Shown here in pieces: positions 10,830-44,641 of a stretch of 64,000 nt of DNA (positions are counted from its first letter, which is position 1; each line of letters starts with the position of its first letter). The DNA lies in assembly GCA_964106645.2 (NCBI GenBank), contig OZ067046.1, one strand, 5' to 3'. A program made the position numbers and the translations under genes. Source of the DNA: Podarcis pityusensis. Taxonomy: Eukaryota. The notes beneath the pieces were generated by a model. It did no database searches, was not told the origin of the DNA, and saw only the letters and a program-made list of their open reading frames with translations.

Positions 10830-12450
10830 CTTGGGTCCTCGGCGGAGCTGTGGTGTTTGCTTTTGTTTCTTTGTTTTTAAAGTAACAACACTGGGCAACA
10901 TATACGCAGTTCACAGAGCTTCTGACTGCTGCAAACATGCTACTTGCAGAAGAGCAGGAGTTTACTCAGGAGGAGGCCGGAATGACTTGCAAAGGGACTT
11001 GCGCCCATGCTGCTTCCACACTGCCGGTTAACGGGGAGCTTTTACGTGGCCCCTTCAGTAAAATAAGGTGACGGAAGCCCCCAAGTCCCCATCCCTCAGC
11101 GCCGTCTCCGAAGCAGCAACGACGTAAGAAGCTTCCACTTTGGGAGGAGGCAGAGGACCCTCCTCCAATCCCGCCCATAGTCCCAAATCCTCCCTCGCTG
11201 CTCCCCTCCTACAAGGTAATCTGAGGTCACGGAAGCACAGCGAGAACGCCTTGTCCTCTTCCGACGCATGCGCAACACATCCCTTTCCTCTCCCCCCCCG
11301 CCACCGCCCGAAGGTTTCCGTGGCGCATGCGCAGCGAAGCCGCGGCCCGCTCCCTGACGAAGAAGGGGAATCACCGTCGACTCCCCATCTATGCGCGCGG
11401 TAGTAATGCGCATGCTTAGTACTGACCAGGGAAGCACAGGGGGCCTGGGCCGGCTCAGGCTCTTGCGAGCCGATATACCGCTGCAGCTTGCTTGGTATCC
11501 CTTACCACCGGCGCACGCGCAGTACGGCCAAGGCTCCTCCGGGCTCGGCGGCTGATTCCGCGGCTTGTTTTGCCGGTAAGCGCGAGGGCGGCGCATGCGC
11601 GGTGGCGGAGGGAGACCTTAGGGCCTGGCGGGTTGTGGCTGCTTACTTGAGAAGCGGGGGCGAGCGATCCGTGTCGCGGCGGTGGGCTGAAGAAGAAGAG
11701 GAGCGCGAAGGGAGGCGGCAGGCTGGCGGGGAAGCTCGGTAAGGAGGATACGCCAGCGAGCCGCAGCCGCCGGCCTTGAGGGGGCCTCGCGGAGTCCTGC
11801 TGGCGAGTGGGCTGAGGTAAACTTTGACAGGCGGCGGGCGCGACGGCGGGTTGGGTCGCTGGCGCAGGTCTATGATCTCAGTGTCTCTGCCCCCCCCCCG
11901 TCTTCCGACCCCGCCGACAGTTGAGGGCTTCGCGTGACCCGCTGCCGGGGACGATTCAGGCCCTCAGGGGTTGGCCGGGAATTGGGGGACAGACTGAGGG
12001 GCCGCTGCCTCTATCTTCCTCCCACCCCCACCCCCGAACCCGGGCACCGTGGCGAGGCGGAGACGGGGCAGCTCCGGTGTTTCATAACCGAGGCGGGAGG
12101 GGGCTGTGAGGGGCTTTGGCTGCGCCCATCCCGCTCTCCGGGTTGCGCCCGGCGTCTCCGGTTTATTAAAGCCGCGCCAGGAGCGGCACCGGTTTGGGGT
12201 ATCCCTTATACAACCGGCGCCGTTTTGGTCCTGTCAGAAAGCTGCCCTTCCCCGCCCTGCGAGCCCGGAGCGCGAAGAGGCATTTTCTTTTTTCTCTTTT
12301 CCTCCTACAGCGGCCCTGAACCTTATTTGAATACTGATGATGCAGGCGGGGAGGGGTTTCCTCGCCTCTCTGGAGCCGCTTGCTTAGGAGCGAATCTAGG
12401 GCATTAGATCAAGTTGGAGCGCCCACGTACTTTCGTTTATTTTGCCGAGA
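10830..12450 (+). promoter_or_regulatory. CLOCK: CpG island: CLOCK promoter and first non-coding exon(s)
   Basis: Dense CpG and high GC. NRF1-type motifs at 11265-11274, 11323-11333, 11407-11416, 11511-11521 and 11591-11600, plus CGGAAG ETS motifs. Candidate donors after 11215, 11575, 11738 and 11816. Confidence 0.85.
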
Positions 12451-19398: not shown

Positions 19399-19858
19399 CC
19401 GTATTTTTCGCCCTATAGGATGCACTTTTTCCCCTCCAAAAATGAAGGGGAAATGTGTGTGCGTCCTATGGAGCGAATGCAGGCTTTCGCTGAAGCCTGG
19501 AGAGCGAGAGGCGTTGGTGCGCACCAACCCCTCTCGCTCTCCAGGCTTCAGGAAGCTATCCGCGGGCTCACAAGGCTTGCGGGCTGCAGCCCGAAGCACG
19601 GGGCGCCCTCCGGAGGACACTCCGTGCTTCGCGCAGGTGTCCGCAAGCCTTGCGAGCCTGGCGGGAGTTGCCGCCGGGCTTGCAAGGCTTACGGATAGCA
19701 GCCTGTTCTGGGGGCTGGGGTTGGGGGAAGCTCGGGCCTCCCCCACCCCAGCCCCGCGGCTGGGGGGGAAAAATATTTTTTTTAATTCATTTCCCCCCCC
19801 CCCAAAAAAACGAGGTGCGTCCTATGGGCCAGTGCGTCCTATAGAGCAAAAAATATGG
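19399..19858. mobile_element. Tc1/mariner-type MITE with palindromic GC-rich core
   Basis: TIR CCGTATTTTTCGCCCTATAGGATGCAC / GTGCGTCCTATAGAGCAAAAAATATGG; TA TSD at 19397-19398 and 19859-19860. Confidence 0.85.
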
Positions 19859-35700: not shown

Positions 35701-38700
35701 AGTTCTGAGGGTGATGGTTCCTCTGGTGGTTCCTTGCACAGAATGCTGAACTTGCCATTCTCACACTGGAAAAATAAGCATAGTATGGGTTGGTCTGTAG
35801 TGGCAAGTTGCTTGAATTACTCCTCTTCCAAGCAGCAGTGAAACAGCAAAATAAGAAATATTTTGCATGTTACATTCACGTCGATTTATATGTATGTTTG
35901 GAAGTCTGGATTTCATGAGAGTTTTTACATTAGAGTAGAGCAGTTCTGAGAGACTTACGTTTTTTTATTTTTTAGGAAATGAGCACTGTTGAAGAACCCA
36001 ATGAAGAGTTCACCTCTAGACATAGCTTAGAATGGAAGTTCCTTTTCTTGGATCACAGGTGCCATTTCTTACAATGTAGTACTAAGCGGTAGCACTCTGT
36101 TACCGTTAGTGGTCACTAATCCTCATTGGCTGTTTATAGCAAGAAATGAATTTTACTTTTTACTGAATACGTTTTTATGTAATTATAAGCACAATTTTCT
36201 GTTTAAAAACTGTGACTGATTTTTTTCTATTCTGAGAAATAAAATAACGACTCTTATGTCATTATCCAGGGCACCACCAATAATAGGTTATTTACCATTT
36301 GAAGTGTTGGGGACATCAGGCTATGATTATTATCATGTTGATGACCTAGAAAACCTGGCAAAATGTCATGAACACTGTAAGTAAATGTCAAAATTTTATG
36401 TAAACCATACTAATATAGAATTGGTAACTTTTGGTGATGTATACAAACTAGTTACAGTGGTACCTCTGTTCCCAAATATCTCCATTGACGAACGTTTCAG
36501 AACCCGAACGCCGAAAACCTGGAAGTAAATGCTTCTGTTTTTGAACGTGCCTCAGAAGTTGAACAGCTTCCGCTGCATGTTTTTCCATTTTCTCAGTGCA
36601 ATTTACAGACTGCACTTTGCGCCTTGGTTTTCGAACATTTCAAAAATCGAACGGTCTTCCAGAATGGATTACGTTCAAGAACCGAAGTACCACTGTATCT
36701 ATATTTGAAAATCTTTTAACTAGGGCTGAAATACTTGTAAAATTATGTTCTAAAAAAGTTTTTAATCACAAAATAGTGCTTAAACAAAAATAGCACTTAA
36801 GTACAATTTAAATAATTGCTTAATAATAATAATAATAAATTGCACACTTAGAATTATAGCTTCCCTGTTTACTAGGCTAGGTTTTGCACACTAGTGTGGC
36901 AGGAACATTGCGCTATCTGAAGTGCGGAAAATCAATTTCAGTTGTGCATGTAACTAATAGATAAGAATAATTATTGATGACATCAGGAGCTACCATTCTG
37001 GAAGCATTCATAGTAGTTCTCGGGTTTCCTTCCATTCTCTCCTTCTATAATATGTTCCACAGCTTTTAAAAATAATTTATTTTTGTATTTGGGATATTAG
37101 AATCAAATGAAGAAAGTTTTGTGTTGGTTTAAAGAAATGATGCAAACTGTTTAAATGCACATTCTGGAAGTGGCATTTTCTGAAGCAGAACCATATTTTT
37201 ACATTGTTTTTAGTAATGCAATATGGAAAAGGGAAATCCTGCTATTACAGATTCCTCACAAAGGGTCAACAGTGGATTTGGTTGCAGACTCATTACTATA
37301 TCACTTACCATCAGTGGAATTCTAGGCCAGAGTTCATCGTATGTACACACACGGTAGTAAGGTAATAGAATTCTGCATAATTTTTATTACAGTTTTTTGC
37401 AACCGATTTTTCAGCTATATTTTAGTACTTCTCCCAGCTGACTAAGAAGTCATCAGAGTCTTCTGAGTTAGTCACAGGTAAAAGCATATTAATGCATTAA
37501 TGCATCCATGTTATTTTTCAAATGCATTTAAATAATGTATATAAAATGTTTGCTACCATTCTGTTAAGATGAACAGACATGCTAATCGCCTGAAATGTTG
37601 GGTTATTTATCGGTAGTTATGCAGAGGTTCGAGCAGAAAGGCGGCGTGAACTTGGTATTGAAGAGTCTCTACCAGAAATAGCAGCAGATAAAGTAAGTTT
37701 TCCACCATCATCTTATATTGGTTCTGTTCATTGCTATAGCTTTTAAAAATTGGCTTGTAGGGTTTGCAGTGCCCGCACTTCAGCAGGTTTTAATAATCCA
37801 CCCACCCAGAGTTATTCATTCTTTCATGTAAATTACCTAGTGATAAGGTGTTCAAAACTGCTCTTGCACAGTTTGGTTTGGATTTTTTGTTTTGCTTTTG
37901 GGTTGTCAGGGTGGTGAAAGAGACACAAACACTGATCATAGGGAGAAGTAAGATGGAAAGACGGACTGTTAAGATGTCAAACAGAGCAGGGATAAGTTAA
38001 GGGAAGGTGAAGCACATGTATAAGAAATTTGCTTTCATTGTGAAAGCCCCATGTTTGAATATTTGGTAAGATACAGTTAGTTTCTGCTAATTATATTGCT
38101 AATTATTTTGTGTGTGATGAACCAGCCAAAACATTTTTATTGTTTTAGAGTCAAGACTCTGGTTCTGAGAATCATATAAGCACAGTAAGCCTCAAAGAAG
38201 CTTTGGAGAGATTTGATCACAGCCCTACACCTTCTTCTGCCTCCAGGAGTTCAAGGAAATCTTCTCACACTGCAGTTTCAGACCCTTCTTGTGAGTGCAC
38301 AGAATCAAAACTATTCTATAGAAGGTTATTGACTTTGGGGCCTTGTGACTTTAAAATGAATGCTATTCATGATAATTGTAGCCTGATGATATTATCAGTT
38401 CTACAGAGAGAGTTGTTAATCTGGTGTGGAATATAAATCTCAATTTTTACCTAACCAATTGGAATAAAGGCTGTTTTGAATATGCAGTGCTATCATTTTA
38501 TTGTGATGAACTATTCACTTGCCTAAGTATATCTGGGCAAACTCAGAATGCTGATGATGAATAAAAGTATCCCTCTTCAATTTTATATTTGCTGGGACAT
38601 CAGCAACGCCAACAAAGATGACAATGGATACTAGCACTCCTCCAAGGCAAAATTTATCCACTCTTGAAAAGTCTGCACAAAGGAGGGCATCGCTTGGTAA

Positions 38701-41700
38701 TCAGGTAATTCTTCAGAAAATAGCAACTCATATTTATCTGTTAAGGCTTGTGAACGTTACATTTTTTTGCTTAAAATACAAACAATACATTAAATAAATA
38801 AATGCTTTCAGTTAGTCACCTAGTTTGGAAACATCCTTTTTAAAGCTTTCAGTTGACTGCTTGAGAATGTCACTGTCCTGAATGTGTCCACCATGTGCAC
38901 AGTTCTACGCTCAAGCAGTCAGCTGAGAGCTTTTCATTAAGTGTCATCTGCCTTTTTAAAAATAATGGAGATTTTTGCTATGAATCTGAATAGAAATTAG
39001 CTTTCAAATAGTGTGCATGAGCAGAACAGTCTTCCCCTTCATCTCCAGTTTACCCCCAAAATCTGCTCCAGAGGTTATGTATTATGGATTGTATTCAGTA
39101 ATGCACCAGTGTCATTCCACTGTATCAACAGAACACCCATTTCCTCACATCCTTGTGTGCCCCACAAATATGCTTCAGAAGGTCCCCCATCCCTCCGGAA
39201 CTGATTTTAAGGGTGCAAGGAGGTCCTAAAGGGGAAGAGGAAACTCTGCTGCATACACAGAACTCTCTTGTATCACCAGAGCTGCAGCTTTGGATACGTC
39301 CTCTATGTGTTTGTAAAATTTGTGTCCTTTTAAAGTACTGCTGTGTTTCATGCCTTTTGTATAAAATGTAAGCATTAGCTCAGTGGATGTGTTTGGAAAT
39401 GCTTACAAAGTCTACTTGTTCCACAAAAACAAAAGAGAATAACACTTTGAGGCTTCTGCTGTAGATTGTTAATCTTTGTCTTCCTGTTTGGGGTGTATAA
39501 CACTTGTATTTGGCTTTTTATATGTGTGTATTTTCATGTGGGCAAATCAAAGTTAAAAAATGGAAATCAGCAAGTGATGTAAGGTGGTCCAAACTCTTTC
39601 TAGCTACCCCGTTTCTTCTCAGGTGGTTAGGGAAGAAAGGAAGATTACATTTGGGCTTGTCATTTTAAAACCTCCTCCTCTATTCTGTCTGCCTCCAAAA
39701 TACATATTTGATTTGATAATTATGGTATGTATATTTCTTTTTAAATCCTAGTCTTTAAATTCACAATCTATTGGGCAACCTTTAGCACAGCCAATGATGT
39801 CCCAGCCTGCATCTTTACAGATTCAGCAAGGCATGTCTCAGGTACTAATTAAATCTGAATGTGTATCAAAGCAGTTAATTTGTATTAAAGCAAGTAATTA
39901 CATTTTGATCCTTTAATGGATCTTCGTTTGATCTAGAATTCAGTTCTTGAATTTGGGTGCATTGGAAGTAGTGTCCCCTGCTATTAACAGGTCCCATTGC
40001 CTGACTTTTGGTTCAGCAGGTCCTGTTTCCTCTTTGTCTAAGATTTCTCTAAATTGGTCAGCATCCTCAGTACTTTTTTAAAAAAGTCTTCTTTGTCAGA
40101 AATGTCAATTTATGACTTTAAGCTAAATACAGATAATTACTTCCATATGCACAGGATTGATAGATTTTTTTTGTAGTGGTTAATTACTTTTCCTATGGTA
40201 TGTTTGCTACTGATTCAAATCTTTCTTGCGTTTTTCTTAAATGTTGCCCTGTAGCCTATGCTTCAGTTTTCTGCTCAGTTAGGAGCTATGCAGCACTTAA
40301 AGGACCAATTGGAGCAAAGAACACGAATGATAGAAGCAAACATTCATCGGCAACAAGAAGAACTGCGTAAGATTCAGGAACAACTCCAAATGGTCCATGG
40401 GCAAGGACTTCAGGTTGGTTAAAGCTGATCAGATACTGACATAGCTAGTGATTCTACACTTAAAATCTCTCTCTCTCTCGTGTGTGTGTGTGTATTTGTA
40501 TGTGTGATGTACAGATTAACACTGATGTTTTGCGTGCTGGAATAAAAAATTATTGATAAAAGACACCTTCATTATTATTAATAATAAAAAAGTTGTCTAG
40601 TAGCACCTAATATACCAACTAAGTTTGTTCTGGCATAAGCTTTTGTGTGTACGCACTCTTCTTCAGATACCATTATAACTTCATTATTAAGTTATTAATT
40701 CAGGAGATTTGTACTTTGCATTTCAACTGAAGTTCTTAACGGAGCTTACAACATTAAGAAAATACAATGAGTATATTTTTATTAGCTGGTTCTATAGATA
40801 AAATATTTCCTGCAAAAGCATATCTTTAATGTTATAGAACTTAATTTGATCAGCCATTCGCTGGAATCCTAGATGTTCATATCAGTTACTAATAAGGGCC
40901 ATGTGATATAACTGCAAGTTCTGCCACTAGTAAAATAAAATACAAATACAGGTTACAGTAGTTTAGTTGTAGGTAGGGTTTCCCCCTTTACCAGATTAAC
41001 AGTATAATCTTATGCATGCTTACTCAGAAATAAGACTTGCTGAATTCAATTTTATTACTCCCAGGTAAGTGAGTATAGAATTCAGTCTAAGCCTCATATG
41101 CCCATTAGAACACTATTATTAGACAAAATAATAGTGTATATAATTTTCACCTCTAAGATAGGGAATTCATTGACCTTTAAACAAACAATGGTTTATGTGT
41201 TCTGAATGCTCACTAGTATTTTAAGCACTGGCATGTATTCTTTTTCTTCTGAAAGATGTTCTTGCAGCAGTCAACTCCTGGATTAAACTTTGGCTCTGTT
41301 CAGCTGACTCCTGGAAACCCATCAAATATTCAGCAGATTACACCAATAAATATGCAAGGTCAAGTTGTTCAAACTAATCAAATCCAAGGTGGCATGAACA
41401 CTGGGCATATTGGTGCTCAACACATGATACAGCAACAGCCTTTGCAAAGTACTACCCAACAGGTAATGCCACACTTGAAGATAATATTTAGTTATGTGCC
41501 ATTGTTTCTTAAATGCAGCCTTTGTATCTTTATGTTGCTATGAGAGAGTGCTCCTTTAGTAGATGTTATTTATTCTTCAAGCACTCACTTCTCCTAGCCT
41601 AGCCTTTGAGGGTAGGGAAGGGCTTAGAGTCAGGAAAGTGTGACTCATATGTCAAAGCCAACCTTAGGAAGTATATTGGTGGATTGAGTGGGTTGTTGCA

Positions 41701-44641
41701 AAAAAAAACAACCCTGTCCCACACTTTGTTTAATATAGGAAAGAAGCAAGACGTGACTGGGCTAGGAAGCTAGACCGTGACAACCCAGGAAGCTAGAGAG
41801 TTCAGATTATTGGTGGATCATTTTTTTGGCCATTCATAAGTGAACAATTTGTCATTGCACAAATGAAGATAGGAAGGAAATGAATGTTGAAGGGCAAACA
41901 GAATTTGCCGAGCTGTTGCCATGGTGCAAGGATTAATAGACAAATCAACATTTCCTTTTGTTGCACATAGTGCCATCTAGTGGGTGTAAAAATAAGTTGC
42001 ACCAGGAGGAAGAAGTGTCTCTCCCTAGCCCTATTTTTTCTCTTTTTGGGAAGCTGTTTCTGCCTCTATAGACAGCAATTCAGGAAGATATTTCGGCTGT
42101 GACAACCAAAATATCGGTAGACCTGATTTTTCAGAAATGGCTGAAGCATTAATTACTTAACTGGAAAAAAACCCCATCCACTCTATTAATCATGGCCTTT
42201 AAACAAATTCTAATTGGAACTGTTCCTTGTCTAAAGTGTGTTCAGTTGTAAATTCCAATCAACTTTGTCAATGGTAAGCTTCCCTAGCATAATAATTAGG
42301 CCGAAACAAAGTGAACCACGTAACTGACAGCTCGCATCCTGATTTTGATAATTGTGGGCTATCTTTTTCACTTCAAACCATGCATTTAAGATTCCTTTGT
42401 CTTGTCTGTGCATGCACATCTGTGTATGCCTACCCATTTGACTTCCTGATTGGCTGCCTGCCTGTGTTTAAGAGACAGCGGGCGTTGGGTGGCACGGGCA
42501 CACACTTCGACCACACCCACCACTGGCATCTACTGGCACAACCAGTGCCGCCCTTGGGCTGAAAAGGGTTTGGCATGCCTGCTTTAAAAAGAAGACAAAT
42601 GGGATGATTTCAAAATACCCCATGCATTGCAATTACTACATTGAAAGGAAGGCCATTCAGTCATTACATACTGTAAGATGTATCTTTTGTGAAATTTCAA
42701 ACTACCTAGAATATCATTAAATTATTTTAAAAAAACATATTCTCCATTTTAAAAAAGGAAAACGTCTTCCACTTTAACATTGGTACCTTTAGTTTCCAGT
42801 CAGGATGGTGAATCATTACAGCCTGAGGGGAGAGAGTGGATGATTTCTAGTTCTCTCGTTGCATCCTTTGAACAAACTCAAACCCTCTTTCCCAGAAAGT
42901 ATTCCTTATGGTGACCCCTTACTCCTTAATAAAAACTTCCTTTGGCTGGTAAGAAGGTAAGGAGATATTTGAGCAGGGTGTCATTTCACCTTTTTCTGGT
43001 CCCTGCACCTTCACAGGCCACAGCTCATTTATGGTCAGTGATTTCAAATACAAGGCTTGTGTTTTCTAGAGAGCTAATATAATATAGATAACGCACCACT
43101 ACAAAATGCCCCCCAAACTAGATGACATACAATTAGCAGAAGCATTAAAAAAACCCAAAAACCAGGCTGCTCAGCAATCTGCAGTTTCTTGCAGTTTGGT
43201 GGGGTTGCCTTAAATCTGTTCCGTCATGCAAAATAATCTCATTGACAACCTGTTTTCTTTGTGCAGCATAATCAACAAAATATTCTCAGTGGGCACAGTC
43301 AGCAGACTTCTCTTTCTACGCCATCTCAGAGCACACTGTCAGCCCCCTTGTATAACACTATGGTGATTTCCCAGCCGGCTACAGGGAACATGGTCCATAT
43401 CCCTTCTAATTTGCCACCAAGTAATAACCAGAATGCTGCTATTACCACATTTACCCAAGACAGACAAATCAGGTAAGTGTTAAGAGAGACAAGTGAGGCT
43501 TGCTACACTTGCTGCTGTGTAGAATGCTCCTGTTCAGTGTTCCAGCCAGCCATGCCTGCCTTCAGGCTACTCCACACTTGATGTGTTGCCCATAAAGCTG
43601 TTAAGCAAATAAAATTAGTCTGGGCACTGATGGAGAGAGGATGCTGGACTAGAGGGACTCTTGGGTTGCTGTTAGGTGTTAAATGAGATTGAAAGTACAG
43701 AAAGCACCCATCAAGCTAATTTGTGGGGTGTTGGTTAAGACTACCTGAGACAGACAACAGATCTTTCTTTTCTTTCACAGATTTCCGCAGGGACAGCAGC
43801 TTGTAACAAAGCTAGTCACTGCCCCTGTAGCTTGCGGAGCAGTTATGGTACCAAGTACTATGTTTATGGGACAGGTGGTGACTGCTTATCCTACTTTTGC
43901 TGCACAACAGCAGCAGCCACAGANNNNNNNNNNNNNNNNNNNNNNNNNNNNNNNNNNNNNNNNNNNNNNNNNNNNNNNNNNNNNNNNNNNNNNNNNNNNN
44001 NNNNNNNNNNNNNNNNNNNNNNNNNNNNNNNNNNNNNNNNNNNNNNNNNNNNNNNNNNNNNNNNNNNNNNNNNNNNNNNNNNNNNNNNNNNNNNTTCAGC
44101 AACCTGCTCAAACTCCGCTGACCCAGCACCCACAACAGTTCTTGCAGGTAAAGCCACATGTTCATTCATACATTCGACAAGCTGGCCGTATAGGACAATG
44201 CAACTTAATGAACCTATACTGAAAGGTGTTCTTCTGTAGATAGTTGATGCTATACATGTTGGGCTTTTGGAAAACACATAATTCCCTGCAGCAATGCAGG
44301 GAAGATAATATTAATTGTAAAAAATGCCAGCCTCTGTCCTAGAAAATGTGGGTTTTTAAGTCAGGCCTGGAGGGGGGGCATCCTGAATTCAGGTAAGGGT
44401 AGGGGAGAAGAGGAAATAGGTGCATTGCACTCAAAAAAGTTTTCCCACATGGCTTGCTTCAAAAAAGGGAATCAAATGGAAATGCCTCCTTTGAAAGTCC
44501 TTCTTCAAACTTCCTATACATCATTTATGGTAAGAGCTGTTTGTTTGGAAGGCTATATTTACTTCATAGCTTGTGCCAGGTATACAAGAGAACTTTATGT
44601 CTGCATACCAGATGGTCTTGGTTGGCAAGAGCCAAGGAGAA

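Follow-up and report, generated by a model that had tools for sequence, protein, structure and literature searches.

The CLOCK exon-19 donor of five sampled squamates carries at +3 the T of the mouse Clock-delta19 allele

In the mouse, the Clock-delta19 allele is an A-to-T transversion in the donor of exon 19, through which 51 residues are lost (PMC1802832). A sequence-only reading of the window (the whole 64,000-nucleotide stretch of Podarcis pityusensis DNA that was analysed, contig OZ067046.1) reported a T at the same intron position of the lizard gene, and proposed either that the site is compensated through the pairing of its +5G and +6T, or that the lizard makes a natural delta19 isoform that could serve as a temperature- or season-regulated splicing rheostat. 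We asked whether this donor resembles the mouse mutant site, or is an ordinary splice site of an uncommon type.

Exon 19 of CLOCK and its donor

Squamate CLOCK proteins mapped on the window delimit 20 coding exons, from 26306 to about 45580; in this mapping the exons were taken singly, with natural database proteins as guides. The features that matter here are as follows (a slash marks an exon-intron boundary).

39752..39841, + strand: upstream exon (mouse exon 18), 90 nt, donor CAG/GTACTA; in a delta19 transcript 39841 would be spliced to 41256
40247..40254, + strand: main 3' splice site of exon 19, with TAG at its end
40255..40413, + strand: CLOCK coding exon 16 (mouse exon 19), exon-19 coiled coil, 159 nt, phase 0-0
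40264..40278, + strand: two downstream in-frame CAG acceptors, candidate starts 40267 or 40279; in other squamates some annotated isoforms start at the corresponding positions
40411..40419, + strand: 5' splice site of exon 19, CAG/GTTGGT, with +3T at 40416, +5G at 40418 and +6T at 40419; supported by squamate orthologues
40422..40473, + strand: flank in intron 19 (+9 to +60), 87% identical to Rhineura, second of 19 introns; against gecko, python and turtle not above background
41256..41462, + strand: downstream exon (mouse exon 20), 207 nt

The region 40255-40413 is an open CLOCK exon of 53 codons, with the borders ...ctgtag/ upstream and /gttggtta downstream, and the sequence-only reading described the exon and its donor correctly. 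It is the sixteenth of the 20 coding exons and has junctions orthologous to those of mouse exon 19, and it gave a match of E=1.6e-24 to the solved coiled coil of CLOCK exon 19 (PDB 5VJI/5VJX). Both flanking junctions, 39841 (CAG/gtacta) and 41256 (gaaag/ATG), are in phase 0, so that a skip of exon 19 would preserve the frame; a frame-preserving length is one trait of conserved regulated cassette exons. The length of 159 nt is identical in gecko, amphisbaenian, iguanian, python, turtle and grouse. Among the genomes compared, both the CLOCK protein identity and the intron similarity of the window peak against Rhineura, as might be expected of a lacertoid lizard.

Elsewhere in the window, a run of 171 N at 43924-44094 lies inside the polyglutamine-coding exon. 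The later part of one bat gene model is CLOCK; positions 774-911 match its residues 25-73 at 65% identity, and the match probably stems from a neighbouring gene, an exon of which was fused into the model.

The donor of exon 19 reads CAG/GTTGGT, and the T at 40416 is a Clock-delta19-like trait that is present in the window. Among the 19 CLOCK coding donors, as placed by homology, it is the sole one with a pyrimidine at +3, the other 18 having A or G, which agrees with the sequence-only reading. If a pyrimidine stands at +3 in about 5% of vertebrate GT donors, at least one such donor among 19 would be met by chance roughly 60% of the time; that it falls at exactly the exon-19 donor has a chance of a few percent. 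That the mouse mutation sits at +3 of the orthologous donor is borne out by published genotyping primers, the wild-type one having the +3 A as its last base and the mutant one the +3 T (PMC5218463). The positional match is a coincidence, genuine but shallow. A sequencing or assembly error at 40416 can be considered excluded, as three independent lizard assemblies and python carry the same base.

A further natural +3T donor of CLOCK is that of exon 11 (AAG/GTTTGT), in gecko (locus position 19403) and python (13507). Both share the AG/GT.. context, with -1G, +5G and +6T; in the window, Rhineura and Sceloporus the +3 base of the exon-11 donor is A.

Distribution and history of the +3 T

Donors were read from the genomic loci of seven reptiles and birds, with each species' own protein mapped exactly on its gene. 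The exon-19 donor is CAG/GTTGGTTA, identically, in Eublepharis, Rhineura, Sceloporus and the window, and CAG/GTTAGTTC (GTTAGT) in Python. In the turtle Mauremys it is CAG/GTGAGTTA (GTGAGT), in Alligator CAG/GTGGGTTA (GTGGGT), and in the grouse Lagopus CAG/GTGAGTAA (GTGAGT), while two rodent-like contigs have CAG/GTAATT and CAG/GTAAAT. The +3T is therefore found in 5/5 squamates sampled; among them are a gecko, lacertoids, an iguanian and a snake, lineages that together cover the squamate crown, or about 190-200 million years. Since it is common to all five, a mutation specific to the lineage of the window's lizard is excluded. A squamate-like open reading frame in a protein match also reads V-G after exon 19, consistent with GTNGGN.

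The sequence-only reading had allowed that GTTGGT might be the ancestral sauropsid donor, and had named this as a finding that would speak against its proposal. For squamates this holds, but for sauropsids as a whole it does not, given the GTG(A/G)GT of turtle, alligator and grouse. The simplest history is most likely a single change at +3, apparently from G to T, on the squamate or lepidosaur stem. On the same comparison +5G and +6T would be older than +3T, as turtle, alligator and bird already have both.

To gauge the retention of the T, we took fourfold-degenerate sites in eleven other CLOCK exons as a baseline, which is not fully neutral: a T in gecko is unchanged in all five squamates at 34/58 of these sites, and never becomes a purine at 47/58. 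Selection to hold the T was rejected, because its retention is no higher than this synonymous background, and the persistence of +3T thus requires no special selection.

Pairing of the lizard and mouse donors with U1

Duplex energies were computed against the 5' end of U1, with neither pseudouridines nor proteins in the calculation. The lizard donor reaches -8.0 kcal/mol, with pairing that picks up again at +4..+6; the murid wild-type donor reaches -8.1 (or -8.0) kcal/mol, and the murid donor given +3T only -5.6 kcal/mol, its pairing contracting to -3..+2. The python donor has -8.2 kcal/mol. Turtle, alligator and grouse donors have -12.2, -11.4 and -13.8 kcal/mol, respectively, so that the squamate donor is weaker than those of turtle, crocodilian and bird (-8 vs -11 to -14). 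Within the window, the exon-19 donor is the fifth strongest of 19 by U1 energy at 37 C.

The mouse primers imply +4A, +5C and +6T at the exon-19 donor. A contig with an exact match to the wild-type mouse primer has +5T; two outer primers are unmatched there, and we therefore call it murid only. Whether +5 is C or T, the mouse donor is without +5G. The +5G-less context that goes with the Clock-delta19 collapse is absent in the lizard, which has +5G and +6T. The Clock-delta19 mutant is thus CAG/GTTA(C/T)T, derived from a +3A (wild type CAG/GTAA(C/T)T), whereas the lizard's CAG/GTTGGT most likely derives from a +3G. The two have in common the orthologous exon and donor, the T at +3, the CAG exon end and an exon that is in-frame, which measures 153 nt in mouse and 159 nt in reptiles.

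With -2A -1G, GT and +5G all present, the lizard site has the make-up of a functional U2-type donor of the AG//GU class with +5G. The computed pairing is in line with published results on donor context. Donors have been divided into the classes AG//GU and GURAG, of the U5 and U6 type (PMC11732430), and -1G and +5G interact positively toward inclusion (PMC8283771). The lizard donor shares with the non-consensus U2-type AG//GU donors of these two studies the CAG end, GT, +5G and +6T, and departs from consensus at +3 and +4 only; there is no mechanistic difference from that class, and its location in CLOCK exon 19 alone draws attention to it. The effects of changes at +3 vary with context (PMC8606209), and certain +3 pyrimidine changes (+3A>C) harm splicing even in otherwise good sites (PMC10661775). 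U1 energy is a good predictor of usage for strong sites only (PMC9311317). Of the two alternatives first proposed, compensation by +5G/+6T is supported; the computed U1 pairing of the lizard donor equals that of the rodent wild type and not that of the mutant.

Other properties of the site were considered. Between 40369 and 40500 there is no GT of comparable strength, and a nearby cryptic donor was rejected on this ground. A temperature-sensitive hairpin over the donor was likewise rejected, as the predicted unpaired fraction is 0.46 at 15, 25 and 37 C. The computed energies and accessibility give no special temperature response or occlusion of the exon-19 donor.

We consider it very likely that the exon-19 donor is an ordinary, efficiently used site of the major spliceosome, of the uncommon +3U type, and ancestral for squamates. 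On this explanation, the sauropsid ancestor most likely had the strong donor CAG/GTG(A/G)GTTA, in which a G-to-T change at +3 would have been fixed on the squamate (or lepidosaur) stem. The T would have been tolerated because the CAG exon end pairs fully with U1 and U5, and because +5G and +6T would pair with U1 and then with the ACAGA box of U6. In the lizard, pairing would thus restart after one mismatch, while the mouse donor, without +5G, would need a helix that runs without a break between -3 and +4; the same T at +3 would then leave it five pairs, and exon 19 would be skipped. Nearly all lizard CLOCK mRNA would then include exon 19.

Inclusion, skipping and other splicing around exon 19

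In Eublepharis, Rhineura, Sceloporus and Python, the RefSeq proteins use precisely this donor at the end of exon 19. Among the matches listed, the top 120 of each search, no join of exon 18 to exon 20 was found in 192 vertebrate CLOCK models of at least 450 residues, 48 of them squamate, in a set that left out short, possibly human matches. The few CLOCK models without exon 19 are truncated or run into other sequence. In one protein search the scored part was the stretch that immediately precedes exon 19, and delta19 models would therefore have ranked. Gene models lean to abundant isoforms and to animals kept warm, and 90% clustering may conceal isoforms. The same set does show skips of exons 8, 18 and 20 and acceptors shifted 12 and 24 nt into exon 19, and minor isoforms of this region therefore do get recorded. 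In nine runs of a close relative, whose RNA nature is only guessed, 0.21-0.27 of the sampled words of 39700-41500 were present; the fraction expected is 0.207 with exons 18, 19 and 20 and 0.134 without exon 19, a measure that is blind to a rare skip. A literature search found no paper on natural skipping of CLOCK exon 19 in reptiles, or on the exon-19 donor.

These results bear on the possibility that squamates weakened the exon-19 donor early and make a minor delta19-type isoform, conditional on cold, season, brumation or tissue and absent from current gene models, whose dominant-negative CLOCK would damp the clock. In the mouse, the delta19 protein is dominant-negative and the period is long. 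A skip in the lizard would be in-frame, the donor is weakened relative to turtle, alligator and bird, and the +3T is retained in all five squamates; but that retention does not exceed the synonymous background, and the pairing with U1 is that of the rodent wild type. Conserved flanks are typical of regulated cassette exons, and those of exon 19 rank second of 18-19 on both sides in identity to Rhineura (0.88 and 0.87), but on the downstream side the identity to gecko, python, turtle and bird is no higher than background. A precedent exists at a different site in Drosophila, where Clk is spliced in a temperature-sensitive manner (PMC11648895). The likeness of this event, Clk-cold, is one of concept only, namely the splicing of Clock as a temperature input in an ectotherm: it uses an alternative 3' site in exon 2, which removes four residues near the bHLH and raises activity, and our analysis of the lizard gave no evidence of an analogous event. 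Unlike for the mouse mutant, neither the 48 squamate models nor the literature search yielded a skipped product. Taken together, we regard regulated skipping as unlikely. The proposal of a natural delta19 isoform acting as a temperature rheostat did not gain positive evidence, the donor being shared by all five squamates sampled, its computed U1 pairing that of the rodent wild type, and no skipping model being annotated.

A second alternative, to which we give slightly less credence still, is that exon 19 is kept and its donor is tuned to other local splicing, that is the choice among three exon-19 acceptors or the skipping of exon 18 or 20. Some annotated squamate isoforms do leave out exon 18 or exon 20, or begin exon 19 at an acceptor that lies 12 or 24 nt inside it, and the flanks of exon 19 are modestly conserved, which may be tied to acceptor choice and exon-20 skipping. 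However, birds, mammals and salamanders have annotated isoforms of the same kinds with a donor that, where read, has a purine at +3, and +3T is thus not required for them. The preferred reading remains that of an ordinary donor.

The three in-frame acceptors lie at 40255-40279 (0, +12 and +24 nt), and use of the alternative ones shortens the start of the coiled coil. Rhineura isoform X2 takes the +24 acceptor, the +12 AG being absent there, and the +12 acceptor is used in some snake, bird and marsupial models; rodents begin exon 19 6 nt in. Several snakes, mammals and a salamander have annotated isoforms that lack exon 20 (phase 0-0). The Sceloporus model contains an odd donor, TCA/GTTATC, 17 nt beyond the orthologous AAT/GTAAGT, which adds six residues (locus 10887-10904) and is probably an annotation quirk or a minor isoform.

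Another exon of the gene also stood out in its flanks. Coding exon 9 (mouse exon 12; region 35976-36269) is 83 nt long, so that its skip would shift the frame, and its intronic flanks are the most conserved of the gene on both sides, with 0.92/0.90 identity to Rhineura and, upstream, 0.79 to turtle and 0.69 to grouse. Its non-consensus donor, CAG/GTGCCA, is kept in squamates and turtle, and reads GTGCTA in alligator and GTGCTG in grouse. The intron that follows is short and conserved in length (195-234 nt), and its retention reaches a stop at 36090. For regulated intron retention or decay-linked splicing, exon 9 is a stronger candidate than exon 19.

If skipping of exon 19 were true, a natural, regulated dominant-negative CLOCK would let temperature act on clock strength through splicing in ectothermic vertebrates, and only if skipping is found would the donor be of relevance to chronobiology. 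As it stands, the locus offers a natural case in which the effect of a splice change at +3 depends on +5 and +6, and a caution that the meaning of a mutation is not transferable between species by position alone: the letter behind the classic clock mutant of the mouse seems to be what squamates normally have.
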